64,000 nucleotides of DNA from Guillardia theta CCMP2712 (lineage: Eukaryota; Protista; Cryptophyta), in assembly GCF_000315625.1 (NCBI RefSeq), contig NW_005434669.1, positions 469,238 through 533,237 of the forward strand. Direction: 5' to 3'. Within the stretch, counting starts at the first letter, position 1. Every line of letters starts with the position of its first letter. Below the pieces are notes generated by a model, which did no database searches, had not been told where the DNA came from, and saw nothing but the letters and a program-made list of their open reading frames with translations. The translations under genes were made by a program, and so were the position numbers. Shown piece by piece: positions 4,956 through 41,090 of the stretch.

Positions 4956-5081
4956 TTTCAGGGTATTCAACTTTGCAAACCCGCCTCGGCGAATTGACAC
5001 TTTGAGTAAAGAAGACACTAGTAAGTTTGATGGGCTGTGCGATGAGATCAGGGAGCGGTTGAAGGCGGCGAGGGATGGGCC

Positions 5082-8000
5082 ATGGCGAGCGTGTTGTTGT
5101 TCCTTGCCGTCACGGCTGGGACAGTTCTCACATGTTGCAACGCGCTTGTCTGCTCGAACTTGACGTTGATCTCCTCGCAAGACCAGAGGGTTGTGGTTCA
5201 GTTCCAGAAGACCTCGGAGGAGGTTTTCATCCTCCAGACTCTACCAGAGATGGGGGACTTATACGAGCAAGTGTACATGCAGAGTAAGGGTTTGCTACAA
5301 GGCACCAAGGTTGCTTCCGTGCCTTACACAGTGAATGCGTATAACGCCCTCTACTACCGCCCATACCCGAAGCAGGCTTCTGCGGATGGGCCGCTATCAA
5401 CCTTCTACTACAGGTCCTTTATTCTTCCTTCAAGCGGGCCTGCTCAAGTTTCAGACCCTTGCTGGGTGAAGGTAGTGGTCCAGGCAAGCAACAACTTGCC
5501 CTTCAGCGGTGGCGCCGGCCAATGTCTGAAGTTTGACGGCGCCGACGACCATGTTTATACTCCGATACAAGACTTCCCTGAGTCAGCCATAACAGTGAGC
5601 ATGTGGATCAAGACGCTGGGAGCCCGCAAGGAGGGGGAGGTGCCGCTCTCTTTCATATCCTTCGCGGGCATTGAGTTTGAGATCCGCGATCTGAATGATG
5701 TGCGGGTTGTGCGCGGGAACAACGTGACGCAGGGAGCAGGCTTCAGCGTGAATGACGGTAAATGGCATCAGCTCGGGGTCACGTGGAACATCAGCGGGAC
5801 TGTCCAGCTGTTCATCGATGGCAGGTTAGTACACAGGACGACGTTGCCAGTTGGCCCTCCAATCGCCTTTTCTGGCGACCTCATCCTTGGACAGAGCGGG
5901 TCGGTGAACTACACAAGCGCCAGGCAGCTCTGGAGGGCAAGCGCACAGTCCGCGTCCACCTTCTCCGCCTACTCGAGCAGCTATGAGCAACTGCTCATCG
6001 TCAACAGGATGGAAGCGCTCGAGGAGATCGTGACGTCCTCCGGCGAATACCGGCAGCGACAACCGACGTTCCTCCAAGGAATCCCCAAGGTAGGTGCAGG
6101 CTGGATGATAACGTCGCTCACGCGGGGTGGCAGGGATGCAGCTGCAGAGGAGGCGCGTTCGATCACACGAGATCCTTCGAGGGACTGATGGACGAACTCA
6201 GAATCTATAAGTCTGTGCGGTCAGAGATCGAGATGCAGCTTGACTCACACACGGTGCTGTCCTACCCCTCGATCCTTTCAGTGAGCAACCTCAGCCTCTG
6301 GCTCTACTACACCATGGACGACGTCGACCGCTGGTCTTCTCAGGTGCCGAACGACTTCAATCGCATCATGACTAGTGCGCTCCTTGGGGGCGGCTCGCAG
6401 GCTGCCTCTCCCATGCGAATCCCCAGCGACGCTCCCCTGGTGGGAGCCAAGGTGGAGGACGTGGTTGTCCCTCTGGGGTCCTGGCAGCTCATTGACCTGA
6501 AGATGATGGACTTCGAGACAAACAAGAGCAAGCTCTATGCTCGAGTTGAGACCCTCCCTACCCTTGGCAACCTCTGGCAGAGTGACGACTCTGAGAACCC
6601 CTCCACCATCATCGACAGGGGGGATGGCAGGACGAAGCCGCTCATCCTCAGCCCAAAGATGCAAGTGTGGTACGAGCCAGTGGACCTCGGGCAGCCCAAC
6701 GTGATGCGATGGAACGACCAGGGAGAGCTCGTGAAGATCGACACAAGAGCAGACACCTTCATGATCCGCATCTCCGACGTTCAGTTCATCCCTGAAGCTA
6801 TGATCGACCCCGACAACCCTCCTCCTTGGATCACTACACAGTATGTTGTCCGCCCTATGACACTCCCCATCCCGGTCAACCAGAGCATCTCCATCCAGCA
6901 GGGCATCGTTGCTCCCGTTCAGCTCTCCTGGATCGACTACGAACGAAAGGACCTGGACTTCCTCTTCCTCTCCATGCTCGAGTTCCCGAGCTACTTCCTC
7001 ACCTGGGGCGCTTGTACGGATCCTCTTGCGTGCTGCTCTTCCAACTGTGCCGCGACGAATCTCTGCATCAACTGCACCGACACCTGCAGGAGGCAGGAGC
7101 TCGAGGACGCTCTCAAGTACTCGTCCTCAGCGAACTGTTCTCTTGGCTCTGTTTCCACAATACCCTCCCGCCTTGCCACGGCCATCGGAGACACAGGCAC
7201 CACCTGCGCGTCCCTTCCACTCAACTCGGATGTGTTCTACTCCCTCCCCGGCCCGCCGGTCTGCTCCTTCAAGGGACCTCCACTCTCAGACGGACTGCAG
7301 GACGAGCTCTTCCTTGTCAAAGTCCAGTCGCAGGCCGCGTTCGTCCCCTTCACCTCCAACTTCTCCTTCAAGATCGAGAGGCCGGGGAGGGCCAAGAGCT
7401 CCGACCATTTCAACGTCTCTTCATTCTCCCGCAGCGCCTTCGTCTCTGTGCAAGGGACCCCGATCAATCGAGCTCCCTTCCCGTCACAGCTGGGGATGGA
7501 GCCGGGAGGCGGCGAGGACAGGACGATGACCATCTCTTACAGCTCCAGCGACCCCGACGGGGACGCGCTCTTCTTCCGCATCAGCGCATTTCCTCGTGGA
7601 GGGAAGGTTTTCAACCCCTCCAAGAGGAACAGCTCGAGGATGGGAGGCCTGGTAGAGGAAGTGGCGGGGCTCGAGCGGTCGATTCCCCTCACTCAGACCT
7701 ACATGCTAGGAACAGCAGCTGTTCCTCAAGGAGCAAGGGTGATCAGGAGGAGGAACCGAGATCCAAGTGAGCTGTTCTACATTGAGGAGGGAAATATAGG
7801 AAAAGAGGAGGGAGGGCGAGGAGGGCAGGGGAATGGTTTCAGATGGGGGAGATAACCGTGAATAGAGGAGAAGAAGAGAGGAAAGAAGTGCTGATATGGT
7901 TTTACAGCTCTGTCGTTGGAGGAGCAATGCGGGACATCAGGAGTGGAAGGGCTGGTATATCACTCTTGCTCTCCTCCTCCTCCTCCTCCTCCTCCTCCTC

Positions 8001-11000
8001 CTCCTCCTCCTCCTGAAGTCCGTTTGCAGGAGATCAGGTTGCAGAGGGTCACCTACGTCTCTGAGCTCGAGCTTCATGCTCTGCTTCCGCTCTCCTCTCC
8101 CATCAGGCTCTTTGTGAGGAGCGAGGACGTGGACTGGGACGTCATCCACGACCTTCGGCATAAGGATCGCACCTCTGTGCTGTACAGCAGAGGCTCCTCC
8201 TCGCCCCCTACTCGCTTCGACCTCACTGCTTCCCACGAGAGGCAGAGAGAGATGGAGGAGACGTGGAGTGTCGTGCCCAACAGCAGCGAGTGGGTGCAAG
8301 TCTGGGTGGGGGTGGCAGAGGAGGTCATGCAGCTTCCCGAAGTGTTCCGCATCCTCCTCCCTCCACTCGAGCTGCCGGCTACCTCCCTGCGGCTCGTAAC
8401 GTGCGGCGCGTGGTCGCTCAGTGCTGTCGGAGAGGTTCCATCCTACCTCAGGGCCTCATCGCAAGTCTTCGTCAGTGGCTTCCATGGCAGCATTCCGCAG
8501 CAGCTACGGGGAGGGAAGGTCTTTTATGTACCGGAGGAGAACTTTCAGGGAGGGGAAGGCCTGTCGATCATTGTGTCTGACGGGCAGCTCGATGCTGAGT
8601 CCTCCTCCTCCTCCTCCTTTCCAATCCCACCTTACGTACGCCAGGTGAAGCTGCCAGACCTTGTGGTGGATGTGGAGGAAGGAGGGAGGGTCTCTGTGGA
8701 CCTTCGGGGACTGGCAGCACAGCTCAACAGTTCTTCTCTCCTCCTCCTCCAGAGCACCAGGGTTGGAGTCCTGACGGGCTCGGCTGGTGACCAGTTGACA
8801 GCCAACACACTTCTCCTTGATCCCCAGCTCTTTTTTTTCTCCTCCTACGGCCTTGCCGCTGGCCCCAACGTCGACAGCTTCCGCTATCGCTTCACCGACA
8901 CGCAGCAAGATCGCTTCCTCGACGGCCTCGTCCTCTTCAACGTCTTCTGCCAACCGGGCAGGATGATTCCCCTCGGAGGCAGCGTCTGCCGGGACTGTGA
9001 GAGAGGAACGTACCAGGTAGGAAGTGGCTTGCAAGCTGTATGCGTTTCCTGCCCGCAAGGCACGTTTCAACCCTCAGCCAAGAGTGCATCCTGCGCCCCC
9101 TGCCCTCCAGGAATGTTCTCCTCTCGCCTCTCCTCCTCCTCCTGCTCTCCCTGCCCTCCTGGCACTTTCTCCGATCAACCGGGAGCCTGGAGGTGTAAGG
9201 AGTGCGGGTATGGGAGGATGATGCCAGTAGATCGCGCGACGTCCTGCTTCTCTTGTGGGTCAGTCTCCTTTAACCAGGCACAGGGCAGAACCTCCTGCTC
9301 TTCCTGCCCCGTCAGGACCAAGACGATGAGTCTCACCGCTGCAAATGCAACTGATTGTCAGTGTACCATTGGATCTTTCAACGTCGGAGGGTGTACAGGT
9401 GCTGCTCATTTCTCCACTGTCATCGAATTCATCCTGAATCTGCTACACACAACGTCTCCATCTTCAACATCCTCTTTCTTGTCCTCCTCTTCTTTAGCCT
9501 TTCAAAGTTTCTCTCCTCCTGACGCCTCCTCAGGTCAGCCTTGCCTTCCCTGTCCTCGCGGGATGTTCTGTGGAGGAGGAAGGAACGCTCCGCTAAGTCG
9601 CGCAGGCTTCTGGTCAGACACCAAGTTGTGGATCAACGGAACAGCAGCAGACATCACCGAGTGCAACTACAGGGCCTTGAGAGACAACTGCGCCGGTCTG
9701 GAACGATACGCTGACTCAGGTGGGAGGAGGGAGGAGGGTAAGTAGAGAACATCTGAGTCTGTTCCTTCACCAGACTTGGGCTACCGAACGTTGCCAGGGC
9801 TGATGCAGGGAGGAGACTGCAGACTCGCTTCGAGGAACTACTCGCACGTGATGATGGACAACTCGCAGTGCAAGGAAGGATACCAGGGAAGGTTCTGTAC
9901 AGCCTGCGCCGATGGAGCTTTTAGAAGTTTCGATGAGAGCTGTGAAATATGCACGGGAGAGCCAGCGGCTCTCTTCTTCTTCGCCGTCATTTTTGTCTTC
10001 ACTGTCTTTGCTCAGCTTGTCAAACTTTTCATCAAGAGACGAACTGAGCATCTCCTGGTACTCGAATGGGGACAGGTGAGTGCAGCCGATTCTTGTACCT
10101 GTTGCTTGCCGTCCCTCTGACGCACTTGGTGAACGTGTTGATGATTTCATGACTGAAAGCTTCCGTTGACTTGCTTGCAGTGTTTCAACATGCTCACCTA
10201 CTTCGCTTGGCCGATGCCTGCCGTCACCAAGTTCCTGGCGAGCTCGCTCTCCCTCTTCAATCTCAACTTCAACTTCCTTCCGTGGGCATGTTACGGCTTG
10301 CAGCTGTCCTCTGTCGCACAGAGGTGCTTGCTTGCTCCGCTGCCTCCTATGCTCGTTACTCTCCTCCTCTTCTCCTTTGAGATCCAACGTCGGTGGGTAC
10401 TGCGCAAGCTGCAGCAGGGAGCAGAGCTGGAGGGCATCTGGCCGATCTCCTGGCACTCGATCATGCTCATCAGCGCGTCCCGTGACGCGCGGGCCACGTA
10501 CAAGGAAGGAGAGGAAGTGGAGGAGACAGCGAACGAAGGCGGAGCCCTTGGGAGCGAGAAGCCAGCAGGATCGAAGGAACACGACAAGACAGGGACAGGG
10601 GGGCAGCGGAAGGACTTGAACGTCACATACACCAAGTGGAGGAGCTCAGTCAGCGGGCAGCACCTCCGGCTTGGGCTCGTTCTCTACGACATGCTGCTCG
10701 TCGTCTCGCTCGCCAACAGCCTGCAGCTCTTCAGGTGCCGAAAGCTCACGGACCAGCGCTCGAGCCTGGAGGCCATCCCCGACGTGCAATGTTGGACGCC
10801 GCAGCACGTAGGCCTGCTCGCCATCGGCTCGCTCACAGCCCTGTGCCATGCCGTCCTCTTCCCATCCTTCATCATGCGCTCTCTCAGTTACTCCTTTCTC
10901 GAAGCTGAGCTCCAGGATCCAGACGTCTTGCTGCGGTTCTCCGATTTCTATCTCGCGTATGAGGACAAGTACTGGTGGTGGTACTTCACTGTCCTCCTCC

Positions 11001-12394
11001 GCCGCATCGGCTACGTCTCGGCAGCGGTCTTTCTGACTAGCTACGGATATCTGCAGGTGAATGATCGTCTTTCAGTGACTTTCTTCCTCCTATCCTTCTT
11101 GTTTGTTCACTCCTGTCTCTGCATTGGCGCAGGTCACGGTCGCCCTCGTGATCAGCGCAATCTCCATGTTTGCATCCAACTATTTCCGTCCCTTCAAGGA
11201 CAACAGATACAACATCCTGGAGTCGTGCCTCCATGCCGTCACCGCTCTCTGCATTCTGACTTCTTCAGCGACTTCAATGCAGATGTCAACAGCTCGATCA
11301 GTCGATCACTCCCAACAAGGTACAGCCTTCACCGGTAAATCCCCTTGTGATTGCTTGCTCAGGCCCCGTTCTCCTCGTCGTAGCGAGCTTGTCCTCTGCT
11401 GCCTTCATAGCAGTGTCGTTTTCTCACAACAATCAGCTGTTTGTCCTCCCTCAGGAGGTTTACTCACTCTCTAACAAGATCAAGGAACTTGCGATGAAAC
11501 GGCTTGACCCCAGGTTTGCAGCTTCCCGCCTCTCGATCCAACTGACTGCCTTCGGAAGATTCATCGCTGTCGTCATCGTCATGGTGCGATGGATTTCGAG
11601 ACTGAGGCAGCGCGTGCAAGCCTCGGCTCTCTTCACGTACCATGAGTTCCCTTTTGAATCTGGCCACGTCGTCATGGGCGAAGAAATGCCGAGGGAGCGA
11701 CGGGAAGCACTGGGAGCTGAAAACGTGATCCCCTGCTATTGTCGAATGTGTTTGTTCTGTTGATCAGGGTGAGCAGCAGATCAAAGGAGAGAAGGGGTTG
11801 ATGGGGGATCAGCCTCAATCACAGCCCCTTGAACACGAATCGAGCATCCCAACTGAGCAAGACCTCAAGCTCTTCAAGCCGATTCGATCGGCCTGGGAGA
11901 CTGACGGCGAGCAGAAGTCTTCCTTCCAAGCACTCCGAGCAGAGGAGAAGGATTTGCTCGCAGACATCCTTCACCATCGTGGCCTCCACAGTCTCCATCC
12001 TCACGCGCATCTGCTCGAGCGACGAGTGAATGTCAAACTGAAGCAGCAGGTCGCGTCCTTGAACGACTCCTTCCACGACCTGTTTGCTCAGGCCTATGAC
12101 GCGTCTGGGAGGGTTGAGGTCACGCTGAACTATCTCAACTCGCTCAAGATGAAGATCCTCAATGCTCAAGTTGACATCCGAGCTGAGCGGCAGAAGAACG
12201 AGTACATGCGGCGTCGACTGGCGGTCGAGGACGAGTTGATCCCCAATGAGCCCATACTTGCCATGGAGCAAGAGAATCTTGCGATGAGAGCTGCGGCCAT
12301 GACAGCTGAAAAGGAGGCTTGCCAGAAAGAGATTCAAAAGTTGGCAAAAGCCATAGAGGAAGAGTTGGAAGATTCAAGCTCGGACAGCGATTGA
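5082..12394 (+). CDS. Large receptor-like membrane protein: signal peptide, LamG/pentraxin domain, cadherin/Ig-like repeats, Cys-rich (ephrin-receptor-like/GCC2-GCC3) repeats, multi-TM region, C-terminal coiled coil
   Basis: CLKFDGADDHV..ITVSMWIK..NDGKWHQLGVTW..LFIDG..MDELRIY (LamG); SDPDGDAL; repeated CPxGTF/YQ..C..C; TM block with CWTPQH, YEDKYWWW and RPFK; consecutive ORFs joined by short introns. Confidence 0.8.
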
Positions 12395-12520
12395 ATGTAA
12401 TCAATGTTTTCACTTGTTTTTAATGTAATCAATGTTGAAACGTGTTGGCAAAAGCATCGAGCATGCATCGTATCAGACCCTTATTAAGCTCACTTGGTAT
12501 TCGAAGTAAGGTCGGGAATA

Positions 12521-13058
12521 TCATTCTTTTTCTAGTGCCTTCACCGCTTCCTTCACTTGCTCTGAAACACAACAATGAGGACTCAAGGTACTTGAAACTG
12601 GTCCTCGCTTACCCGCCAGAGAAATGGCCAGTTTCCATTGTTCTTGACTCAATGCAATACCTTTGCTCGACTTCAGCGGATAGTCTCATACCATATTTGA
12701 ACTCGTTCCCACCGGCTTTCCCAGGAAGAAAATCCCCGTCTTTCTCATAATATTCCCTCAGGTGGATATTTACATTCCCCTAAAAAGCAAAAATCATCAT
12801 GATTGTGGTGAATTGATTCGAGGACCTTAAATTTGTTGACAGTTATCCTCTTTTGGGTCTTCCCTCCTCTCTTTTCTTTGGGGTCGGACAGCTAGATTCA
12901 CAGGTTAACCGAAGGCTGATTCTTGTTGTGAAGTGCCATACCTCTGCCCAGAAATTTCCAGCTGAGTCCTTCCTCAACTTCAAACCTTCCGGATTCGCTT
13001 CCGTTTCATCTTCTCCGGCGACTTCCTCCTCAGTTTTCTTCCTCTTCTCCTGTGGCAT
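12521..13058 (-). CDS. SUB1: Transcriptional coactivator PC4/Sub1 (5 exons)
   Basis: Manual splicing gives [41 protein letters not shown], the PC4 ssDNA-binding domain. Confidence 0.9.
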
Positions 13059-13997
13059 TGCTTGCATGGGGTCAGTCAAATCGTCAACTTTCCTTGCTAA
13101 ATTTGTTCCCACATTCGATATGACAATGATCAAATGGTTACAACCAAACCTAAAGACTTTCATGTCGTCTTGTTGTCCCTTTTCGACACTTTAACTCTCC
13201 TTTGCCACGTTCTCTCCTTCTTGCTCGTCTTCCCCGCTCTCTGTTCCCTTCCATGAACTACCACCACAAACTCACATTGGCGGGAAACCTTGCCCTACAA
13301 AGCAAGTGCGGTGCGCCTCAGGAACAAGCTAGAGATTGTGCGAAGGACAGCAGCGCAACAAACAACGAGACAACTTGCGTCATGGTGAAGGAGCTGCCTT
13401 TCTCTAATTTAACGCTCGGGCGGGCTTGTTTTCAGGCGTCGTAGATTTTTTTTTCAAGTAACCCCACCCCCACCTGTTAGAAACTCCATGGCCACCTACC
13501 CTACGATGAAAGTTTTGAAGCAAGATTTTTACCCCTCGATTTAAAACATTTGTGTGAAAAATCAAGGTAGGGGTAGTACCCTACCCACCAGATTTTTCAA
13601 CCCTACCCTGCCATAGTCTCCGCGGCGCCTACAAGGTAATGTCCGAAATGGATGAAGACGCGACAGTGCTGCTTGTTGATGGCTTCTTGTGCTGTTCTTG
13701 CTGTGCATACAGTTGATAGCATAAAGTTCATGTTTAATTATCATCACTTAAAATTCAAGTAATGTGAACAATCGGTCACGGCACTTGTGCATTGCTGATT
13801 GCACGTTGCTCACATTCCCCAGCAATTAATCGTGACAAATAGTGATCCTTGCAACTTTTGTTGAAACTGATCGATCTTGCATTGTTTTCCTGTAGCAGAT
13901 TTGATATAATGACTCTGTCATGGTGGTGGTTCATTTTCTTGTCTTCGACTTTAACTTACTGTTTGAGCCTAACACGCTTTTTTTCATAGAAAGGTTC

Positions 13998-14847
13998 ATG
14001 GGGGACAAGAAAGCAGGTATTTGATCCAGTATTGTCTCTGAAGTCAGCATTATTGTGCCCATTCTTGTGCAGTTTTGTATCTTTCCGGATAGTTGCATCT
14101 CGAAGTGTTGTTGTAACCTTCCACCTAAATCCGATGTGGCAGCTTTTGCCCGCAAGAGGGAAGCATTGATTTGCGTGATTGGCGACGAGGATACTGTGAC
14201 AGGTATTTTTCACGAAATGATTGTGTTGATTACGTCTTAAGACACTTGCTATCGTAGGATTCTTGCTTGCGGGAGTAGGGGAGGTCGGTAAATATGTCTT
14301 TTTGGCAAACCATCTGAATGGACGAACAGATTGATTCTAAGAAGAACTCGAACTTCCTCGTCGTGAACAACAGTAATATCTTTCATCTCTTTAGATTGGA
14401 ATCTTGATGTCGCATCTGTCATGCGGAGTGTTGTTCACGATACATATTTTCTGATTGGGTGTCGGCACAGAAACTCCTGTCAATCAGATCGAGGAAGCTT
14501 TCAAGGCCTTCACTGCGCGTGATGATGTTGCCGTGATCCTCATCACCCAATCGGTATTCAATGGATACCTTCAGCTTCTGTAGCGCGTGTTCACATCGTT
14601 GCTGCTAGGCTGCCGACAGTATCCGCTACCTGCTGGACGATTATGAAAGCATGATACCGACGGTGATTTCTCAAGTTTCATTCGTGCTCTGATCTTTAGC
14701 TTCAAGGTCTTGGAGATCCCTTCGAAAGATAATCCCTACGATCCTTCAAAGGTAATCTGTGCTCAAGTTTTTCCATTCAACTTACAAAGAATGAAGGACT
14801 CAGTCATGCAGAGAATTATGAAGAAAATGTCCGTAGGAACAGATTAG
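13998..14847 (+). CDS. ATP6V1F: V-type H+-ATPase subunit F, multi-exon
   Basis: Spliced MGDKKAAFARKREALICVIGDEDTVTGFLLAGVG..IEEAFKAFTARDDVAVILITQ..PTVLEIPSKDNPYDPSKDSV. Confidence 0.95.
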
Positions 14848-14975
14848 TAACGGGATCAAATTTACGTTTCACAAAGACTTTATTATTGATACTTCCTGTA
14901 AAGATTTAGAATCTCGTTTAAACACAATCGATGGTTTTAACTGGTCCACCGGAACTCTCATCTACAGTTTTGCTC

Positions 14976-15667
14976 TTAGCATCTGCTAACCACTTGTAGG
15001 AGTTGAAGGCGGAGGTGTGTAAAAACTATCGAGAGATGGCCTGCGACCGCGCTTATAAAAATCTGCTGCAAGCAAGCAAAACTCACCCTGATCCTGATTG
15101 TGAAAGCAAATAGAACAACCAAATTCCAAGACCCACGGGTAGACAAATCGTGAAAGCCTATCACAAAAGCAATGCATTAGCAAATGGCTGTACAGTAACT
15201 CGTCCACCTGACAACAAATATTTCGAATGCGCTGTCGTATTCCGGCATCAGATGAGGCCACGTAAGACTCCTCATCCCATACGCATGACAGCATTCCGAT
15301 GCTTATGAGTTGTACTGTAGAGGAAAATCAATTCGTTTTCGACCCGTTTTTGATCATCCCACATGCACATATGACGATTCGAACCTTATCAAACAGAGAG
15401 CATATGACGAAAAAGATCTGAAATGAAAGGTAAATGGGAAATTAAAAGCTTCAGAAATATACTAGAATAAAGACGATCACGACCCTGGCCCATTTCATAA
15501 CACGCTTTTGCTCTTCAGTCCTAAAACGTTGATTAGAAGTCAACAAGGTTGAATCTGAGCCCAACATTTCAGCCCCTTGATTGAAGGAAGACTCACTTCC
15601 CTTGAATGAACCACTTCGCTGTATTCCAGTCCCATCAGCCGCTGCCCCAGTTGGATCTGCAGACATC
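14976..15667 (-). CDS. Small hypothetical membrane protein, multi-exon
   Basis: MSADPTGAAA..KWARVVIVFIL followed by hydrophobic exons (VQLISIGML, AFTICLPVGLGIWLFYLL). The 3' end is uncertain. Confidence 0.5.
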
Positions 15668-16089
15668 TGAAAAATTCTAATCAAATCTCGAAAATGTCGA
15701 TTGATTGCATTCTGCATTCAGTACAGGTTGAGCGTTTCAAGTGCCTCAACATCGAATGAATCTTTTGGTCAGTTTTGCCAGCCTGCCTTGTTGGTATGAC
15801 TGGCAAAACTACAATGCAAAGCTCGGGCCAGTCTACCGGCAAAACGCAAAGAAGCCATGTTTTTTCTGTTTGCGAGAGTTCAACATACAGACAGCATGAT
15901 GGATGCTAAGATGAACTTGTTCCAAAGGGCGATAAGGTGTGATTAGGTTCAACATCATCAACGTAGTACAAGGTGTTCTAGTATCCCTCCTTGCTTTGCT
16001 CTCAGTTTCCTGTTGCCCAAACCACCTCCATCTCGGTGGTCTATCACCCATCACCCCCTCATCCCCCCGTATCTTCACCCCTACGATTT

Positions 16090-16650: not shown

Positions 16651-16694
16651 GATGCACAATTTGAGATTCTGTTTGATTGAGTACATCAACAAAA

Positions 16695-18418: not shown

Positions 18419-18508
18419 AATTGGAGGCCGTGTGGAAAACAATCGAAGGCAGGGGTGCAACACCCCCCTTTTTCTCGGGAGGAAGACGGGTACTGGTTCA
18501 CGCGGGTC

Positions 18509-18742
18509 TTGTCCTCGTACTGATTTTTAACTTAACTTTGAGTAAACTTTTCTGGGACTCAGTTGGAAGCCGCATTGAACGCCGTCCGACGGTCGAGACC
18601 GGAGTACGGTCCACGTTTCACCACTCCGAGGTGGCAGGCTGCCGGTGCGGGCTAACCGTCCGGAAGTTGGGGCCGCGCTGAGTCACAGGGTCTCTCATTT
18701 ACTCAAAGTTAAGTTAAAAATCAGTACGAGGACAATCAGGAG
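18509..18742. repeat. Two inverted copies of the dispersed fixed-end micro-repeat inside a GC island
   Basis: TTGTCCTCGTACTGATTTTTAACTTAACTTTGAGTAAA (18509-18546) and its exact reverse complement (18698-18735, consensus match extends to 18742). Confidence 0.9.
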
Positions 18743-18989
18743 TACTGTCCGCTGCCGCTCAGAGGCCAGGGGCATTCAGGGGGGCTGCCTCGTGGGGGCC
18801 TCAGCCTCGGACTGCGGCCTGGCGCGGCCGTCGAGCGGCAGGCGGCCCGGGCCCGGCGGGCGCCGGACCTACGGATCACTGCACCGATAGTATTGCCTCG
18901 CCTTGAGACGGTGAGCAGGACCAGGTTGTCCCGCATCCCCTTCATTCTCCCACGCAGCCGTTAGACGTCGCCGCCTGACGCCCGACCGC

Positions 18990-27987: not shown

Positions 27988-28598
27988 ACAGCCAGGAACA
28001 TAACATTGCGAGGTATACTAGGTACATGGCCTGACCATCACTCTCACAACATAAAAGGCCTGTCCATACCGTCTCATATCGAATTCATAGCACATCTGTT
28101 CTAGGTCAACCTCTCACTTAACTTCTATCACATCATCTCTTCTCTTTATGCTGTCGAGCCCCTCCTGCATTCTTCCTCGCTTGAACGCCATTTTCCTTCA
28201 CCCGTTTTAGATCATCAGAGACGTCGTTCACAAGTATGGGGTGGGTGGGTCCACAAAGGTGGGGGTACTATAACATATTTACGGGGGTACCAAGAAGGTT
28301 CAGCAGGTCTCCATGAGGGTGGGGGTACAGTTCGGAATTTGCAATCGATCGCATAAGGTACCCCACCCCCGATTATCTCCAATTCCATTATGCCATGACC
28401 CCTGCTTGACCCAATCGGTACTAGTACCCACCCTTGAAGCAACAAAAAGCTAGATTATAGGGTGGTAGTCGAAAGCCATCTCTCATGTATCCTTCTGGAT
28501 ACGTACGCCTTTACTCAAAGTATGCCTGAGTGACATATAACGAGGGTTTCACCCTTTATATGGCAGTCACCGGTACCGGTGCGACTCTCGTCCTCCCA

Positions 28599-29285: not shown

Positions 29286-29345
29286 AAGATTTCGTTGTTT
29301 CAATAGTAATACAGTAAAGAATCGTTTTCTCGACCTCGATGCCCC

Positions 29346-31944: not shown

Positions 31945-31997
31945 TTATGGCGCTCGTCGCTCTTGTTGTTCCTTGCCATACCAACCTGATTTACACT

Positions 31998-32040
31998 GCC
32001 ATCAGCGGGCCATCAGCGGGCCATCAGCGGGCCATCAGCC
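31998..32040. repeat. Short tandem repeat (GCCATCAGCGG) x ~4
   Basis: Directly visible 11-bp unit just upstream of the minus-strand gene start. Confidence 0.85.
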
Positions 32041-32114
32041 GCATTTTCTAGCCAAGTCTTCAAGTTTTACTCAATGTTTTTGAGAAGGCAAACTAGTACC
32101 GCGTACTGAATTTT

Positions 32115-32390
32115 ACTCGGCGGCCGGGCCCCGGGCCCGGCGCCGCTTCAATGTCGGACTCGAGTCGCTCCGAGTCGGAAGGTCCATCAACCCGGCGTGG
32201 CTCAGTGGCCCCCGGTGGCAGTGCTGGACTACTGCTGGAGTCACGGAGACGGTCCGGCGGCCGGGCCCGGCCGCCGGGGCCGCGGCGACTCGAAACTTGC
32301 TTCCGGGAAATCCGGGAAACACAGTCCTTTCTTTACTCAAAGTTAAGTTAAAAATCAGTACGAGGACAACAGTCCGGTCATGAGTCAAGT
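32115..32390. repeat. GC-rich island containing a 38-nt copy of the fixed-end micro-repeat (32332-32369)
   Basis: CCGGGCCCCGGGCCCGG-type palindromes and TTTACTCAAAGTTAAGTTAAAAATCAGTACGAGGACAA. Confidence 0.85.
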
Positions 32391-33517
32391 TGAATGATGC
32401 TGACAATCAGGCTCAGTACAAATATTTTAAACAAATAATAAAGATCGTGCTAATTACTCAGTGACTCTAGTAGTACTAGTGGCTGCCCGAAATAAAAATA
32501 AACTTTATTTTTTGTGCCCATGGCTGGAGGACGCTGGTGGCATGGCTGCAGCCCGGACGAATCCAAACTTTAGTCAACAATATCCGAAGGAACCAGTGAT
32601 GCTGGTGGACCCGAGTACTGTCAGCAACCCATTTTACCGGTCTGATTAGAGCCGTTAGCACGGTGGGTGGTCAACAAAAATCAAAACGTCGGGGTCATTT
32701 GAAGTGGAAAGGAGGGGTGGTGATGGTTGTCGTGAGTGGGATTTGCCCACCAGAGGTGGTCAGAATATGCCGCAGAGCGCTGTTGTGCAAAGGCAGGCTA
32801 AGGTAGATCATTTCATGAGTAAGTCAATAGTAAATATTGCAATACCACGAGGCAGTGAGCTTTTCCCTGGCGAGTCGAAAGGCAGTGGTCTCACGACAAG
32901 GCTTGCTGACTCGGCCACCCCACCCCGAGATGTTGTTAAGATACCATAGCCTTGAAGAATGAATATTCTATAGGTGAAGCAATAGGTTACCAAGGCTAAG
33001 TGCATAGCATTTGCCACCCTACCCCCCTTGTATCGGCCTTCTGCGGTACTGCTGATGATGAGACAGAACATTGTAAGGTAGTATTTTACCACTTCAAAAA
33101 TACCGTCAGCATATCTGAAAATAAGTGAGATAAAACATTGTTAAGCAAATCTGAGCCTTCGAGATGTCGGATGTGGGTTGTATGTTTGACGAAAAAGCAT
33201 CTTTTTGAATCTTAAAGGGTGCCAACAGTCAGCAAATCTCGTTCCCCCTCCTGTGACTCCTAGTCACAGCGTACTTCTTTGTCGAGCCGAGTAAGCAAAC
33301 AAAGCAACAGCAAACAAAGCAACAGCAACCAAAACCAACAACCCTTCCAAAATCCCGCTGCTTCCCTCTCCCAAACTCTTTCACTCTCGTCCCTCCTTTG
33401 CTTTCGTCCCATATCTCTGTCTCTCCCTCAAACTTCCTTTCTATCCTAACCGACAAGAGCTGTCAGAAAGGTTCCTCATTTCCTGTGCAGCACAGCAAAC
33501 TCTATCTCAGAAACGTC

Positions 33518-34903
33518 ATGGTGGACTCCATCAGAGTTGCTCCTTGGCAAATGCCAGTGATGCCATCTTCCAAGAAATCCTACCAATTCGAAGCAGACAC
33601 AACCAGTGACGACGGCGATTTCATGGAACAGATCAAGGATCTGATGTTTGAAGAAGAATGCCAAGTAGCAATTTCTCTGGAATCGCCTTTGAAGATCTTG
33701 CGGACTAACGACGAATGGCTCAAGAAATTTGGATACTCCCGATCAACCATTACCAGCCGAACACTGCGAATTGTGCAAGGACCATACACGCATACAGCTA
33801 ATTTGCATCAATTGTTAATGAAGGCCTCGACGGAGAAATCAGCCGAAGCTCACTTGACGCTGTATTCCAGCGATGGAACACCAATGCTGTTGAGGACAGT
33901 GGCACGGGTTCATAATTTTCGGTCGCAACAAGTGTGCGTTCTCGAGATGTTTAACTCGGAGGCCATGACGATATCAGAAGCGATGAAAGATGAAAACGTT
34001 GCGAAAGGGCTGATGTGCACATCAAGACCAAGGAGGTTCACTTTTGCAAGCTCACAATTCTCGAGGCTGTTTGGCTTCACGGAGCAGCAGTCACAGAACT
34101 GTGCCCCAAGAATGATTGAAGGACCGCAAACGGATGTCCACACGTTCCAGTCGATGATTACCAACTGCAAGAGAGGAGTCGTACAAGACGGCCACATCGT
34201 CTTTTACTCTAGTCAGTGTGTGCCGATTTCTTGCAATCTGACCATGTTTCCCATCTCTGATTGCGGTGGAAACATTTCGCATGTTCTCGTCAAGTACTAC
34301 CCTGAAGCCCTTCAAACCCTACCTATGGAAGCCTGTGCAATGGCTACCAGCACCGACATGTGTATGCCTGCTCCAGTGAAGTTTCCAATCAAGAGAAACA
34401 AGCACTGGATGCTGACTTCGCAGGACAATGGGCGTGCAAGAACAAATCGCGCCATCGGTTTGGATCTCCAAACAGAAGTGGAAGACATGAAAAGGATGAA
34501 TGAGCATGGACCGTATCAGCAGCCTCAAGCGCCTGGTCGACCCTCACATACTTTCCGTGCCGAGAGCGTTGCAACCACCGAAGCCGAAGCAGAGATCGAA
34601 GAAGATGTCGCGATGGGTGCATACGATACCAAGTCACGATCTCTGAGCGAATCGCCACGTTGTCGGCGAAATTCACTGGATGCAACTCTGTACAAGAACA
34701 TCTCCCACCTATGGTCCTTTGTCATGGTCTTTTGCTGTTACTTTGCTGCATTGCCATTGGCGGCGAAGAAGGCCTATTCTAATAACACACTTGAGCACAA
34801 GCTCAGAGGGCGCAACTGTATGATCAGCTCCGATTTTTCAAAATCGTTCAAAATGAGTGGAAAGGAAAGGAGGGTAATGGACTCCTGGATTCATCTCGAC
34901 TGA
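33518..34903 (+). CDS. Intronless tandem PAS (LOV-like) domain protein
   Basis: Two repeats: ILRTNDEWLKKFGYS..RTLRIVQGPYT..LYSSDG and FASSQFSRLFGFT..CAPRMIEGPQTD..FYSSQ. Hydrophobic segment near the C-terminus. Confidence 0.8.
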   Translation: MVDSIRVAPWQMPVMPSSKKSYQFEADTTSDDGDFMEQIKDLMFEEECQVAISLESPLKILRTNDEWLKKFGYSRSTITSRTLRIVQGPYTHTANLHQLLMKASTEKSAEAHLTLYSSDGTPMLLRTVARVHNFRSQQVCVLEMFNSEAMTISEAMKDENVAKGLMCTSRPRRFTFASSQFSRLFGFTEQQSQNCAPRMIEGPQTDVHTFQSMITNCKRGVVQDGHIVFYSSQCVPISCNLTMFPISDCGGNISHVLVKYYPEALQTLPMEACAMATSTDMCMPAPVKFPIKRNKHWMLTSQDNGRARTNRAIGLDLQTEVEDMKRMNEHGPYQQPQAPGRPSHTFRAESVATTEAEAEIEEDVAMGAYDTKSRSLSESPRCRRNSLDATLYKNISHLWSFVMVFCCYFAALPLAAKKAYSNNTLEHKLRGRNCMISSDFSKSFKMSGKERRVMDSWIHLD

Positions 34904-34991
34904 ATCTTGGATCAATGTAATCGTTTTTCATGTTTTCGATGTTTATAGTTTTCTTCAATAAATGTGAATTTGCAGTTCAAGAAAGCCTGAG

Positions 34992-36009
34992 TCAGATCGC
35001 CATGTTGTTGCAGGCCTGATTAAGCTGTTGCAAGTTTATGATTCAGCATGAGATCTCAAATTGGTTTCACCTTGCCAATGGAAGAAAGAAGCAATTCAAA
35101 TTCTGTCTCATCCAGCTCCATCACGACTTCCTCTAATTGCCCGGCTCCATCGCTAAGGAATAAAATGACCTGTGCATTCGATTAAGGCTATAATCTTCCC
35201 CCTTTCATGCCTCGAAACAACCTGAAGATGAGGGATCCGCAATCCAGAAAAGCAGCTGAAAGAAAAATCAGTGACTACAGACGCAACACTAATATCCTTC
35301 TTACTTGCTTTCAAGGGAAAGGTTTAATCTCCAGTCAAAGTCAACCAAGTATTTTCCTGTAAAGCGAAGTCTTCAGCAGGACCTGGGGTTTTACTTTCGA
35401 ACAAAGGAGGTGCCTGAAAGCTGACTTGATTGCAAAATGCAAGCTTTTCTGAAACATCGAGATAAACGACAAATTCAAAAAACATCTACATTCAAACCTT
35501 AGCTCAGGAAGCCTCTTGCTAAAAGCAGACGATGCTGCCTGAGCCTAAGCGCACATCAGTTTCGAAACATCTTGCCCGTTGAGATACAATGATACCCGAG
35601 AATCTTGTACGCCTGCATCTTTCAACTGAAATAACATCAACTTAAATCATGAAAGACGTACGGTTACCAGAGCGACAATTTCTTTTTCCGGATTGCCGGT
35701 TTGCATCGCCCTCCGAACGAACATGCCGTACGCCTAGGAAACCATCATACAAGTAGTTGAATGTCATGCCAAACCTCTACAGCTGCAAGTTCTCCATTAA
35801 CAGCAACTTCATCTCTCCTGCCTTTTCTGGACTCAGCGAGAAAGGTCTGAAACGCACATGATCTCACTCGTGTTTTGGCAGAAAAGATCAATAGCACTGT
35901 TCATCAAAATTTCATGATGATTCCCACTGGCATCCGAAAGAGAAAGCACGTCTTGAATCATGACAGTATGTCAGAACGTGTCGAACAGGTCCGGATCTGA
36001 GCTTTCCAT
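34992..36009 (-). CDS. COMMD8: COMM-domain protein (COMMD8-like), ~10 micro-exons, absent from the ORF track
   Basis: Spliced C-terminus ILVDFDWRLNLSLES..FSGLRIPHLQVILFLSDGAGQLEEVVMELDETEFELLLSSIGKLNQAC matches the COMM domain (DFDW, P-x-L, E-L/M). Confidence 0.75.
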
Positions 36010-36224
36010 CCAATATTTCCTCAGTCCTAAACCAAAATGTCGAATTTCTTTCGACCTCCATCATTCAACGGTCTCAAGGTGTATACCTGCGTTCGTTTCT
36101 ACACTGTTTATCCCCATTCCAACTTCTCTTCTCCTTCCCATGCCTCTACCCATGCTTCTGTCCCTTCCCTGCACCCCTGTGTACCTGCCATCGACGAGCT
36201 GTTGTGACACGAACACAATCCTGA

Positions 36225-36297
36225 GCTTGACCCTTTACTCAAAGTTAAGTTAAAATCAGTACGAGGACAATCAGGAGAGTCGAGGAGGCTTGACCCT
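36225..36297. repeat. 53-nt micro-insertion flanked by 10-bp direct repeat GCTTGACCCT
   Basis: GCTTGACCCT (36225-36234) + TTACTCAAAGTTAAGTTAAAATCAGTACGAGGACAATCAGGAGAGTCGAGGAG + GCTTGACCCT (36288-36297). Confidence 0.85.
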
Positions 36298-38100
36298 GAC
36301 ACTGTCGCACAGGCCAAACGGCGAGAAGAGAAAGACAGCGAGAACCAAACCTAAACCTGCCGACTGCTGTCCCCCAAACTTAACTGATACCTTCACTTAA
36401 CGGCGCGCAGGACAAGTCCCCCGCGCGGCCATGCCAGCGATGTCGCGGTGGCCGCCGCCGAAGGAATGAGACGCATACCGGGATGCACCCGCGATGATGG
36501 CAGCGTAGGACAGGGAGGCCTTGAGCTGACGGAAGATCCTGGACCGAATGCGTTTGCAAGTCGGATCACCTGAGACGTCTTGCGAGGCCGAGAGACCATC
36601 CAGCGCTGCCGTTTCCTTGTTCGCCGAGCGATCCGCCAGCCACCACAGAAAGCGCAACGCATCGTCCTGCAAGAGGCCATCAGTGCTGGCGATGATGGGA
36701 AGAAAGGCCTTTGGCGGGACGTGCTGAGCATATGCATTACGATGCCCTCGGATCTTCCGCTGTGCTGCCGCTTGCAGTTTGCTCCGAGCGAGGTCCGGTA
36801 TTCCATCATTGTCAAAAACATGTGACATGCTGAAGTCCAGGATTAACCCATGCCATCCGCCGCCAGTAGCCATCAGTTGTGGAAGTTCAAAGTCCCCTAC
36901 ATGATGATCTTCAGGGCCATGTTGGGAAACGTTCTGCCTGGTGCCGGGTACGCCTTGCACGTGGACGCGGCATCTCACTCCGGAATCTTTGATGAGGGTA
37001 CTGAGGACGGCATTGCACTTCTCATGCGCATCAGTCCATAACTGGCTGCGGTGCCTGCAGGTTGCCATGTGTGTGGTCCCCCCAGGATGACGAAGAAGAT
37101 GATGGCATCGATCGCAGTGCGGCGGGAGGTCAACCGGCAATCCATGAAGAAACTTGTCAGCGGCAGCCACCAAGCTGATGGGCTGCTGCTCAAAGATCCC
37201 AAGGTTTGTACTTTCCATAGTCGAGTGCCAAATCGTGCGCTGAGGGGTAAACTGAGACAGAAGTTCATCAACCGGGTGGCCTGGTACTCGAAGGGGAGTA
37301 GAGAAGCTGGAGTGGTGTGCCAACAAAGATCTCTGGCGCTCTGAAAGGTGAGCCCGAATACTGCGGAACCGGGGAAACTCCGAGAGGAACTGAGCCGTGA
37401 GCTCCCGCTGGGCGGGGATGAAAAGCGCACTGCCCGACGTCCCAAATAATTCAGGCGAGGGGATCCAGCCATTGTCGCACGCCTGAGGAAGCTCCGCCAA
37501 GGAGGTGTACGCCGAGATGCCCTGCTCCATCAAGTGCCTGTGAGTGTCCAAGAAGGCAGCAAGCATGGGGACAACATCCCCAGCGTCCGCTTGCTGCGGT
37601 TGGCGGATTCGAAGCTCAGTGTCAGAAATGATCCGGTGGAAGAGTGGCGGTGTAGGGAAAGTCCAATGCTGGAAGATGGCAATTTCACCCGCCCATTTGA
37701 GAAACTTGGCAGTCGCCGACCAGAATGCGGTGTAGGCCACGCCCTCCTGCGGGGTGAACCCATCTCCTCCAGCACTATAAGGCAACTGACGTTTGAAGTA
37801 GGCGAACTGAAGGTCAGATGGAGGGGTGCCAGGGGCAGGTTGCAGGACACTGAGATGAACCCTCCTGTGCCTGGTTCTGTGGCCACTGAAACACCTTCGC
37901 CAGGAGACGGAGATTCGCGACGTCAAAGCACTTGCACTGGGCAGCGGTCAAGGCCGGGGAGATTCCACGCAAGAAATATTGGAGGGTGGGAACGTGGGTC
38001 GTTTTCAAGAGCTGCTTGAGACCCAACGCAATGGGAAATTGTTCCAACTGGGTCAATTCAGCATTGAGGGCATTCACCTTGGCAGTGATAAACTCTGAGC
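36298..38100 (-). mobile_element. 5'-truncated non-LTR retrotransposon, CRE-like clade with restriction-like endonuclease; one frameshift near 37830-37880
   Basis: Intronless ORF: post-RT region (PTLQYFLRG..CFD; QLPYSAGGDG), CCHC knuckle CDRC-x11-H-x3-C, AHEKC (RH-like), VGDF..LILDFSMSH..KIRGH..FLPIIASTDG (PD-(D/E)xK-type RLE). The RT core is missing. Confidence 0.82.
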
Positions 38101-38163
38101 AGTCCGGCAGTCCGGACTACCGGACCCCGGGCCCGGGGCCCTCGACCTCACAGAGTCACCTAA

Positions 38164-38196
38164 TGAACCGTTTTACTCAAAGTTAAGTGAACCGTT
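38164..38196. repeat. 15-nt micro-insertion flanked by 9-bp direct repeat TGAACCGTT
   Basis: TGAACCGTT + TTACTCAAAGTTAAG + TGAACCGTT. Confidence 0.8.
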
Positions 38197-38935
38197 CAGA
38201 TTCGTCACGGCGCCAACCGTTGAATTGGTCCACCGTCAAGTCAACAGTTCGAAGTCATCAGAGTGGTGCGTGCCTTTTGCCGCCTGGCCGTGATGATTCT
38301 ACACCGGCCGCAACATCAACGTCAGGCTGGCGCCAAACTTCAACCTTGAGCAAAATCACTTAAGGTCTCGCTATCAGAATCACTGACCTGCATGGTTGCC
38401 ACTCCACCCTTTAGTAGGCTTCCGGCGTAGGAGATAGGTACTATAGTTTTAAACGACGTTTCGAAGCAACGGCCGTCCTTGTTCACAAGACCCGGTCATG
38501 TATTCCACCCCACCCCCTCCTGGGCCGGGAGCAAAGTGGTGCCGGAACTCCGAACTCAGGGGCTATTGCAAGCGTCTACAGACAGCTTTTAGCCCTATCT
38601 CAACGTACGTTGGAGGATGATGTTCGAAATAAAAGGTTTTCGGAATCTGGAAGGAGCTCCGATATTGCTAAAAATAATCTTTTCAAAGAATGAGGGAAAA
38701 CTGCTGACATCCGAATCCCATAAAAAACAGAGGAAGCATTTGTGCACATCCCAGTCCACGAAACCGAAAGGCAAAAAGTACACAAAGAAGGACAAGAGCA
38801 GAGGAAAGGAGACTCGTCAAGAACAATCTGAAAGCAAAGACTCATTCTCAAGCAGGAATACAAATCAATCTCTACTGTACATTACAGCTTCAATCTCAAA
38901 TTCATACTACTAAAAAACTCTCATTCGTAATCGAA

Positions 38936-39271
38936 ATGCAAGCCATCACAGACCCGAGCCAACTTTTCGAATGGGTCGGGAATTTGTTCCAGCAAAATCA
39001 AAATGGAGGCACTGCTCAACAAGCTAACGCTCTTCAGACATCACAACAGCGAGTATGTGCTCCCCGCTCTGTACTAAGACGAAACCGTGCTCGGAATGTC
39101 CCCAAAAGAGTAACGTTTTCTGTGGAAATCGCAAATAGTGTTACGATTCCGGTCAGCTGCATCTCTCCCAGCTTCAAATCAAGCAGAAATGTAAGATTGT
39201 CAAGACCCTGCCACCATCCGACATCACCGTCAGCATCTACCTCTCACAAACAAACTTTCTTGATGATGTAG
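38936..39271 (+). CDS. Small intronless protein, WVxxLF / SILK-like / RVxF family, paralog 1
   Basis: LFEWVGNLF, PRSVLRR, KRVTF; aligns by eye with the two neighbouring paralogs. Confidence 0.75.
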   Translation: MQAITDPSQLFEWVGNLFQQNQNGGTAQQANALQTSQQRVCAPRSVLRRNRARNVPKRVTFSVEIANSVTIPVSCISPSFKSSRNVRLSRPCHHPTSPSASTSHKQTFLMM

Positions 39272-39867
39272 TCGGCTATAAGTCACTCTAAGAATGTTAA
39301 ATTCCTTCATAGATTGTACATATCAATAAATTGCAGTTTGGCTCTATGCTTCTTGATATGAAATGAAATGCAAGTTTGGCATTGATCTGCATGATAAAAC
39401 TCATCTGTGGCTGGGAGAACCGATCGCTACAGATTAATTGCTTTTGATGCACCTTGTTGTTTTGAGAGAGTGCTCGTGCATTTGTGAAAGTGGATCTTAG
39501 TTCAATTTACAAATCATACATGAATCTTGTAAACAACTTCGTGCAAACATTTGAGACAGGTAAGACACAGAGTATAATGTTCATAGCGATGTAGAAACAA
39601 GGTGGTCTGTTTGAAAACATTGGAAAGATCTGGGCAATTGGATTCGTCGATTTGTGGCATATGCCATTTATGCGTCTTGATTTGAGAAAATGATTGAGTT
39701 TATCAGAACCAATGAGTTTGAACGATTGGGAGACTTACTCAAATTTACCACTTTACTTCAATTCATTGAATATTACTCTACAGTTCAATTATTTAGGTTA
39801 TTGAGTTTCAAGATTATAGTTATTGATCACAAAACAATTGCCTTGAATGAGCATACGATCATCCTTA

Positions 39868-40164
39868 TCAAGGCAAAATCGAACGTTCGATTGATGCACA
39901 AGCAGCTGATCGCCGTCTGGTGCAAGCTGACAACTTCACACTCTTTCTCCTTCTTCCGTCAGAGCATGTCCTTGTGCCATTTGTAATTTCGACGCAGAAT
40001 GTCACCCTCTTCTCTTGTTTACATTTGGAATATCCTCGACGAAGTGCCGATCTCAACTCCTTCAAAGGTTCGCTGGGCTCATCTTTCACGATAAACTGAT
40101 GTTCTGGTCCAAACAGTTGTTCGACCCATGCTAAAAGGGCGTTCGAATCTGCAATTGCTTGCAT
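39868..40164 (-). CDS. Small intronless protein, WVxxLF / SILK-like / RVxF family, paralog 2
   Basis: MQAIAD, LLAWVEQLF, LRSALRR, KRVTFCVEI. Confidence 0.75.
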   Translation of the reverse strand: MQAIADSNALLAWVEQLFGPEHQFIVKDEPSEPLKELRSALRRGYSKCKQEKRVTFCVEITNGTRTCSDGRRRKSVKLSACTRRRSAACASIERSILP

Positions 40165-40439
40165 GTGCAATATCGATTAATGCTTGGAAGCTTGTATGTT
40201 ACTTGTCTGCAAAAGAGTATATCTAAACGATCTTCTCTGCACAAAGGCGATTGTTTGTTGAAATCGAAGGGGATTGCAAAGTTTTCCCCTCGCTTCTTCC
40301 CATTTACCTTGCTTCACTCACCCACAGGGACGACCCGGTAGGGGGTCGGAATCTATACAGGGAATAATCAAGGTATGGTCATGGGATATGGGTGGGTAGG
40401 GGTAGTTTCAAGGGGAAAGATCCGTATGGTCCTGACTGT

Positions 40440-41090
40440 GAGTTTTTAACCTGACACGAATTGGGAGTTGCTGACTCCGATCGGCGTCTGGTCAGAACAG
40501 AACGTCAGCCGGAGCTCCGATTTATTTAACTCCAGCGGCCAGCCGGGGAACTTTCCGTGACCGTCTGACGGACGTGACCGGTACCGAACTTCGAGTTGAA
40601 CTCGCCGACTTGTACTGACGGTCCTACTGATCTTTAACTTTTTTAACTTTGAGTGAAGATCCGGACGGAGGCTCAGAGCCGGCGGAGTCCCGGAGTCCGG
40701 GACCACGGGTCGGCGCCGGACCGGCGGCAGCGGCCGCTCGCCGGGCCGGGCCGGGCCGGTCCGTTGCCGCGGCCAGACGCCGCGGCGTGACGCCTGGCTA
40801 GTACCGGGACGGCCCGTGACGGTCCGATCGGGCCCCGGTCCGAGCGCCGCGGGCGGCGGCCGCCGCTCAGTCCGGCCGCCCGATGATCATTGAATGGGGC
40901 CGCCGCTAGTACCGGGGCCCGGACCACGTCTCAGGCCAGAGTCACTGGCGGCCGGGCCGGGCCGGGCCCGGGGGGCAGGGGCGGCCGCCGCGTGACGGAC
41001 AGTGACGGTCCGAGTCAGGCCGGGCCGCGGCCGGGCCCGTTGGCCAGTGGGCCGCCCGGGCCCCCGGGGCCGGAAGGTGGGGGGTCATAG
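40440..41090. repeat. GC-rich quasi-palindromic island with a degenerate micro-repeat copy (40621-40654)
   Basis: Long CCGGG/GGCC arrays; GTCCTACTGATCTTTAACTTTTTTAACTTTGAGT. Confidence 0.75.

Follow-up and report, generated by a model that had tools for sequence, protein, structure and literature searches.

Short dispersed motifs in the Guillardia theta genome are very probably 3'-terminal stubs of an R2-like LINE left by abortive target-primed reverse transcription

A short motif with a fixed TTACTC end recurs throughout the Guillardia theta genome, and it very probably represents the 3' terminus of an R2-like LINE that is dispersed, was active recently and leaves stubs behind through abortive target-primed reverse transcription (TPRT). 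The short copies are genuine insertions; they take the usual 5' truncation of LINEs to an extreme. The window analyzed here is a stretch of 64,000 nucleotides (contig NW_005434669.1, positions 469,238 to 533,237). A first-pass annotation of this window had proposed a new, unannotated system working on some other RNA. The motif is not the product of such a system: what serves as template is the end of the 3' UTR of an R2-like LINE that encodes a reverse transcriptase (RT), and a long copy of this LINE lies inside the very interval covered by the proposal.

All motif copies that had been listed for the window were present. The 10-mer occurred 7 times exactly, and allowing one mismatch gave 12 matches compared with 4.2 expected. 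The genome-wide search that had been recommended returned 2151 matches to the first 15 bases of the motif and 6 to a control 15-mer, an abundance far above chance. LINE copies are dispersed over all large contigs at about 1 per 30-40 kb. A sample of 89 copies was taken from exact 15-mer matches on contigs C1-C4 only, which biases it toward younger copies. These sampled copies bore out both the fixed end of the motif, with T at -1 in 84 of 89 (94%) and commonly CT or TCT preceding the end, and the variable truncation at the opposite end. Loci picked by element positions 31-53 kept the fixed end in about 24 of 30 cases. Perfect identity to the element was found in 37 of 62 short copies, and real copies of 10-14 nt exist among the genome matches.

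Read on the opposite strand, the motif is the 3' end of the LINE (...CTTTGAGTAAAG). The element is a single-ORF non-LTR retrotransposon of 4368 bp, a length taken from two copies with a common 5' end, and one long frame spans it on the strand complementary to TTACTC. The ORF matched RVT_1 (Pfam, 4.7e-8), which was the only Pfam domain in the 1085-aa and 1138-aa frames; there was no N-terminal APE-type endonuclease. A Pfam search of the N-terminal 500 aa detected no zinc-finger or Myb domain of the kind that characterises the R2 clade. The family profile matched R2 proteins at 3e-15 and L1 ORF2p only at 4e-4. The best protein matches came from cryptophytes (Baffinella, 49%; a Guillardia theta RT, 29%). 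In the single RNA run analysed, LINE transcripts were hardly detectable.

The C-terminus contains the pattern C-x2-C...H-x3-C, followed by AH(D/E), GD and D-x-(T/S)-x-x-H...K, all conserved in homologs. An AlphaFold model of the last 289 aa (pLDDT 71) had R2Tg, R2 and R2Bm as its best Foldseek matches (E 4.7e-4, probability 1.0), and PD-(D/E)XK cap-snatching nucleases came after the R2 proteins. By these motifs and this model, the C-terminus is a CCHC motif plus a predicted PD-(D/E)XK restriction-like endonuclease (RLE) that is closest to that of R2. R2 proteins (R2Bm, 8gh6; R2Tg, 9dou and 9nl3) were the best PDB matches of the LINE in both sequence and fold; within the nuclease region the identity to R2 is no higher than about 13%. 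Judged against solved R2 and L1 structures, the element belongs to the RLE-bearing (R2-like) LINE group, and like R2 and other RLE elements it has a single ORF in which the RT is followed by the CCHC motif and the predicted endonuclease. The RLE group of non-LTR elements includes R2, R4, NeSL, CRE and Hero.

Extending the longest copies to a donor had also been recommended, and the copy at 36235 proved to be part of the 4368-bp LINE. This copy had been described as a 53-nt insert at 36234-36287 with a 10-bp duplication, which is wrong. The sequence runs on to 38096; the 53 nt are merely the first 53 bases of a 5'-truncated, 1862-bp LINE copy (36235..38096, sense on the minus strand, 3' end at 36235), and the supposed duplication is a misreading because GCTTGACCCT is the next stretch of the element. 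The long copy holds the 3' UTR (160 nt) and the last third of the ORF but no RT core. Its open frame of 509 aa (36397..37926, minus strand) covers the C-terminal LINE protein, with the post-RT linker, the CCHC motif and the predicted restriction-like endonuclease. It is 99.6% identical across 1859 nt to a copy at another locus (L043), and nine further genome copies match positions 1-1862 (some from 3 or 13) at 98-100% and extend past 1862. CTGAGC is found on both flanks of the long copy, and an 8-nt filler, TTGACCCT, lies at its 3' junction.

Flanking direct repeats had been reported in the window as well, and apart from the misread 10-bp case they are present at five of the eight copies, including the long one. 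A stub of 16 nt (38173..38188, sense minus, TTACTC on plus), located 77 nt past the truncated end of the 1862-bp copy, has an 8-9-bp flanking repeat, (T)GAACCGTT. The 37-nt stub at 32333..32369 (sense minus, TTACTC on plus) is 100% identical to the element and has the repeat ACAGTCC and a tail reading TTTCT on the plus strand, that is, AGAAA in sense; read depth there is about 270x single-copy, as expected of a repeat. At 28511..28521 (9-11 nt, sense minus, TTACTC on plus) the 8-bp flanking repeat is GTAYGCCT (GTACGCCT / GTATGCCT, one mismatch), and at 4999..5009 (8-11 nt, sense plus, TTACTC on minus) the repeat is AGTGTC and the tail AGAA. Direct reading of the flanks revealed no exact repeat at the three remaining copies. 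Two of these, 18509..18545 (37 nt, sense plus, TTACTC on minus) and 18699..18742 (44 nt, sense minus, TTACTC on plus), are both 100% identical to the element, and the 3' end of the former faces the latter 153 nt off. The third is a degenerate stub of about 36 nt (40621..40656, sense plus, TTACTC on minus) that begins TCACTCAAAG and has internal changes.

The proposal that synthesis ends after a few tens of nucleotides was upheld for most events. The median length of the 89 sampled copies was 33 nt, and 72 of them were under 50 nt, with lengths spread evenly across 15-49 nt and no peak at any one length. The copies were sampled as 600-bp and 210-bp pieces, and lengths above about 300 nt rest on k-mer counts and read depth. 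Counts of 15-mers with at most one mismatch were 2151, 930 and 416 at positions 1, 26 and 54 from the 3' end, 401 (control 21) at position 100, 47 at 600, 15 (control 5) at 1800 and 12 (control 2) at 4330; the corresponding copy numbers are about 380 at position 100, about 12 at 1800 and at most 10 at 4330. Between 10 and 50 nt about 55 end points fell on each nucleotide; the density dropped to about 0.8 at 54-114 nt and rose again to several at 115-230 nt, which defines two position-specific stop zones, one up to about 50 nt and the other at about 115-230 nt. Copies longer than 600 nt make up only about 2% of the total, and full-length ones about 0.2-0.5%. In independent ChIP DNA, read depth drops from about 115x to about 15x single-copy along 36250-38050.

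The copies bear the hallmarks of TPRT, namely a 3' end that stays fixed, 5' truncation of variable extent, enriched target-site duplications (TSDs) and junction microhomology. Flanking repeats no commoner than in controls had been named as an outcome that would speak against insertion by TPRT. Exact TSDs of at least 7 bp were found at 19 of 89 copies (21%) versus 0.75% of re-paired controls, an enrichment of about 28-fold; an exact flanking repeat of at least 6 bp was absent in about 60-70% of sampled copies. Microhomology of at least 2 nt occurred at 9 of 24 truncated junctions (p = 8e-6), and fillers at junctions and tandem or chimeric joins also occur. In one LINE copy a micro-insert is flanked by an 8-bp duplication, and three aligned paralogs are empty at that site. 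No empty sites or presence-absence polymorphism were seen in reads, which is uninformative with reads of 38 nt and contigs that break at the repeat.

A stop-free span of 240 nt was found around 19% of short-copy sites versus 54% of window positions (p = 5e-10). The claim that the copies are intergenic thus holds statistically, as an avoidance of coding-like DNA. Insertion at promoter breaks was not borne out; what the data contain is this avoidance together with a weak preference for nicking at AYY^AGT among 24 reconstructed targets, which have nothing more in common.

We propose that the predicted endonuclease would nick loosely defined sites, roughly AYY^AGT, and that the freed 3'-OH would pair with the predicted RNA end ...GAGUAAAG(A)(A) and prime cDNA synthesis. 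Synthesis or template would end within 50 nt in about 80% of surviving events, with a second stop zone at about 115-230 nt, around the ORF end. The short cDNA may then be joined across the staggered break by microhomology-assisted end joining, giving 6-12-bp duplications. Abortion by the enzyme and RNA templates that were already shortened give indistinguishable outcomes in these data, and part of the skew must come from long insertions being selected against in a compact genome. A more tentative suggestion, which we hold to be possible though doubtful, is that the two stop zones and the few stops at 54-114 nt are a natural footprint, replicated a thousand-fold, of an initiation-to-elongation barrier in TPRT, in which case the family would be a major source of small promoter-region indels in a cryptophyte alga. 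Such a barrier could come from the RT's own grip on the 3' UTR or from an aborting host factor.

The RT might instead copy short 3' fragments of LINE RNA to their end, whether these arise by degradation, by slicing or as small RNAs of at most 50 nt, in which case the spectrum of lengths would reflect where the RNA is cleaved or protected rather than processivity. The sharp drop near 50 nt, the plateau at 54-114 and the second drop at 115-230 do resemble the footprint of an exposed and protected 3' UTR. However, the even lengths over 15-49 nt show no run-off peak, the minimum free energy fold of the 3' UTR was no better than that of shuffles (z = -0.79) and an Rfam search with the 3' UTR matched no family, and we consider this explanation unlikely. 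On the same fold and Rfam results, 3' UTR structure was dropped as the reason for the stops. Somewhat less likely still is an ordinary insertion spectrum from which long insertions were purged in a gene-dense genome while tiny ones persist. The avoidance of coding-like sequence by short copies fits such a filter, as does the finding that long copies often lie within repeat nests (C111, C22, C43), but short stubs are also plentiful beside long copies inside these nests. Moreover, the end-point density is not monotonic, and a filter on length alone is insufficient because it cannot yield a trough at 54-114 nt and then a peak at 115-230 nt.

If repair of random double-strand breaks captured short pieces of LINE cDNA without any role for the endonuclease, this would account for the majority of copies that have no clean TSD, for the junction fillers and for the clustering of copies, of which two or more lie within 600 bp at 13 of 70 loci. 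L1 insertions made without the endonuclease typically have no TSDs and a truncated 3' end. Here nearly all copies keep an intact 3' end, TSDs are strongly enriched and a pyrimidine-rich nick site is preferred, all of which makes such capture improbable. Some copies form inverted pairs 150-190 bp apart, which would suit a DNA transposon seen through its terminal inverted repeats, footprints or MITEs, or else an artefact of adapters or assembly, yet one such pair (L061) is a palindromic duplication of the entire locus. The two element ends are unrelated and there are no terminal repeats; a DNA transposon or MITE was ruled out because the far end has no inverted repeat and an RT is encoded. The motif also came through the artefact check that had been suggested, since three independent data sets (2011, 2021 and 2026) all contain it at matching depth, and we give these last readings almost no credence. 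A SINE with a LINE tail was ruled out too, as the sequences past the truncation of 36-55-nt copies all differ and share no common body. A spliced-leader relic, suggested by the ...TTTGAG ending, was abandoned once the ORF was found. Abortive TPRT of the R2-like LINE remains the reading that we prefer.

Like R2, the LINE makes TPRT-type insertions with 5' truncation. Unlike R2, it is not site-specific but occupies thousands of unrelated, dispersed sites, and it has no single target of the kind used by site-specific RLE clades (28S rDNA, spliced-leader genes, microsatellites). L1 truncations average hundreds of bases, in contrast to the median of 33 nt and the two discrete stop zones found here. 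We know of no report of a spectrum dominated by 10-50-nt stubs for the EhLINEs of Entamoeba histolytica or the R2-like elements of the German cockroach. Both are non-site-specific RLE LINEs (PMC1635306, PMC7650587), and our LINE resembles them, as described there, in its many loci and loose sequence or structure preference. The premature cDNA ends and 5'-junction microhomology are like those of L1 truncation, in which microhomology or NHEJ operates at the 5' junction (PMC2666801), and the fillers and tandem or chimeric joins are like the template jumps of LINE reverse transcription (PMC2104539).

With this assignment, about 2000-3000 hitherto unexplained short motifs in the 87-Mb genome are open to masking and dating as LINE stubs; most of them are too short for standard repeat finders. 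What had appeared to be a new genome-wide system becomes an annotated LINE family with otherwise ordinary biology. The stop profile provides a cheap in vivo read-out of where R2-like TPRT fails; truncated insertions are the main practical problem of the R2-based gene-insertion tools under development (PMC13580325, PMC13586686).

The apparent placement of stubs 5' of genes, which had been noticed earlier, is consistent with the ORF layout of the window. At the stub 4999..5009, an ATG at 5082 sits 73 nt downstream.

Exact matching placed the 10-mer TTACTCAAAG seven times in the window, at the very positions reported by the first-pass annotation. We then extended the search to the whole cryptophyte-like eukaryotic assembly of which the window is part (87 Mb, 669 contigs), as that annotation had proposed, and the first 15 bases of the motif gave 2151 matches with at most one mismatch, compared with 6 for the reversed control. 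The exact 11-mer TTTACTCAAAG gave 2124 matches versus 34 in its control, and about half of those beyond the exact 15-mer list were true stubs of 10-14 nt, several of them with target-site duplications (TSDs).

To identify the sequence behind the motif, 30 loci were fetched by way of the distal part of the consensus. Almost all continued past base 53 as GCTTGACCCTGACAC..., and therefore the 53-nt insert described earlier, with its 10-bp duplication, is the beginning of a 5'-truncated copy of 1862 bp (36235-38096, minus strand). Nine other copies were 98-100% identical to it over an equal span and extended further, and two copies had both ends in common, which sets the full element at 4368 bp. 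Its single long frame is encoded antisense to TTACTC, so that the sense strand ends in ...CTTTGAGTAA-3' after a 3' UTR of 160 nt. A Pfam search of the frame detected RVT_1 (4.7e-8) and no other domain. A profile built from 17 homologs reached 3e-15 against solved R2 proteins and only 4e-4 against L1 ORF2p. Within the C-terminal 289 amino acids there is a CCHC-like motif together with conserved D...D..H...K motifs, and the best Foldseek matches of a structure model of this region (pLDDT 71) were R2Tg, turtle R2 and R2Bm (E 4.7e-4, probability 1.0), with PD-(D/E)XK cap-snatching nucleases next. The element is accordingly a LINE of the RLE type and R2-like. Its family is young, since long copies resemble one another at 97-100% and perfect sequences make up 37 of 62 short copies; LINE RNA was barely seen in the one RNA run analysed.

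BLAST against the element delimited the window copies at 4999-5009, 18509-18545, 18699-18742, 28511-28521, 32333-32369, 36235-38096 and 38173-38188, with a degenerate one at 40621-40656. Most of the short ones are 100% identical to the element, and the copy at 36235-38096 is without the RT core, consisting of the post-RT part only. At 36225-36234 an 8-nt filler, TTGACCCT, separates the repeat CTGAGC from the 3' end of this copy and accounts for the false 10-bp TSD. The filler is identical to element positions 56-63, and may have arisen when synthesis began briefly at an internal site by mistake and was then primed again at the RNA end. The two full-length copies (L044 and L046) have an identical AAGTTTTTT just 3' of the element in sense, followed by unrelated sequence; either the 3' end of the master reaches 8-9 nt past GAGTAA, or the two landing sites are similar. 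Many copies (L004, L013, L019, L026 near position 1523; L131, L132) have internal insertions of 4-13 nt missing from the consensus, many of them rich in GC, such as those following GAGGAG or AAAG, and a separate small-insertion process may act on the repeats of this genome.

We next asked whether the short copies are insertions, using 89 distinct copies at 70 loci (exact 15-mer matches on contigs C1-C4). The base before TTACTC was T in 84 of the 89, with CT in 55 and TCT in 34, suggesting that the template ends in ...GAGUAAAG(A)(A). Exact direct repeats around the copy plus a 0-12-nt tail reached at least 6, 7 and 8 bp in 27%, 21% and 15% of copies, as opposed to 2.5%, 0.75% and 0.23% when flanks were re-paired. 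Among 24 repeat-flanked cases, 9 have a repeat that shares 2-4 nt with the truncated end of the copy (p = 8e-6), which is microhomology-assisted joining; for LINEs, truncated junctions formed with microhomology or by NHEJ are already known (PMC2666801). The primer nick in reconstructed targets showed a weak AYY^AGT preference. In a comparison among paralogous LINE copies, one of them (L009) contained a stub of about 20 nt between duplicated CCCTGACA, and the same site was empty in three aligned copies. Several results therefore say that the short copies are insertions. The sequences beyond the truncation points of the sampled copies were all different, with no common body, which rules out a SINE body behind them.

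The sampled copies had a median length of 33 nt and 72 of the 89 were shorter than 50 nt; four ended at 50-115 nt and nine at 115-170 nt. Genome-wide counts of 15-mers (at most one mismatch) agreed with this spectrum, giving, by position from the 3' end, 2151 matches at position 1 (control 6), 930 at 26 (control 9), 416 at 54 (control 0), 401 at 100 (control 21), 47 at 600 (control 1), 15 at 1800 (control 5) and 12, 3 of them exact, at 4330 (control 2). End points are dense at 10-50 nt, sparse at 54-114 nt and dense once more at 115-230 nt, a non-monotonic pattern. A survival filter that depends on length cannot by itself explain a trough followed by a renewed high, and the stop zones are position-specific. 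The 3' UTR folded no better than shuffles and matched no Rfam family. An assembly artefact, which the first-pass annotation had raised, is contradicted by independent raw ChIP DNA reads, in which depth along 36250-38050 declines from roughly 115 times the single-copy level to roughly 15 times, indicating that assembly is not the source of the pattern; the repeat is present in the 2011, 2021 and 2026 data sets alike.

Taken together, these data indicate that the motif population consists of 5'-truncated tails of a retrotransposon family that is new but belongs to a known type. Abortive target-primed reverse transcription, as originally suggested, is essentially right as the mechanism, but the supposed very abundant, unannotated system is these LINE tails. 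Non-site-specific RLE LINEs are already known (PMC1635306, PMC7650587). What is unusual is the degree of truncation, with about 80% of copies below 50 nt and about 98% below 600 nt, and the two discrete stop zones.

The stubs are located in non-coding DNA, in keeping with their initial description as intergenic: a stop-free span of 240 nt contained the joined flanks for 19% of short copies, compared with 54% of window positions (p = 5e-10). Within the window the stubs occupy intergenic gaps, most of which lie 5' of ORFs, a placement that selection would equally produce. At 13 of the 70 loci at least two copies fell within 600 bp; some clustered copies are joined in tandem across a tail of 3-4 nt, and at L059 a '+ then -' pair is only 8 nt apart. 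Such joins would fit template jumps, or priming from both break ends. Nests of many fragments of this LINE, in both orientations and many lengths, lie side by side at G000:C111:162500-165000 and C22:292000-308000. Two inverted 20-nt stubs at L061 (G000:C2:123330-124135) are flanked on each arm by 30 nt of almost the same sequence; the locus as a whole is a palindromic duplication of about 190 bp rather than two insertions. The same 16-nt stub with identical flanks occurs three times about 2 kb apart (L112, L114 and L115; G000:C4:352599, 354626 and 356417), in a tandem repeat of about 2 kb formed later than the stub insertion.

GAGTCAC and words resembling ACTGAGTCAC recur with striking frequency in the intergenic flanks of stubs, both in the window (18660-18698, 38140-38160) and in many sampled flanks (L055, L079, L102), and may represent a promoter motif used in this genome. 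At 34984, where RNA reads terminate in untemplated A runs, lies the poly(A) site of the PAS-domain gene (33398-34903, plus strand), 81 nt past its stop codon.
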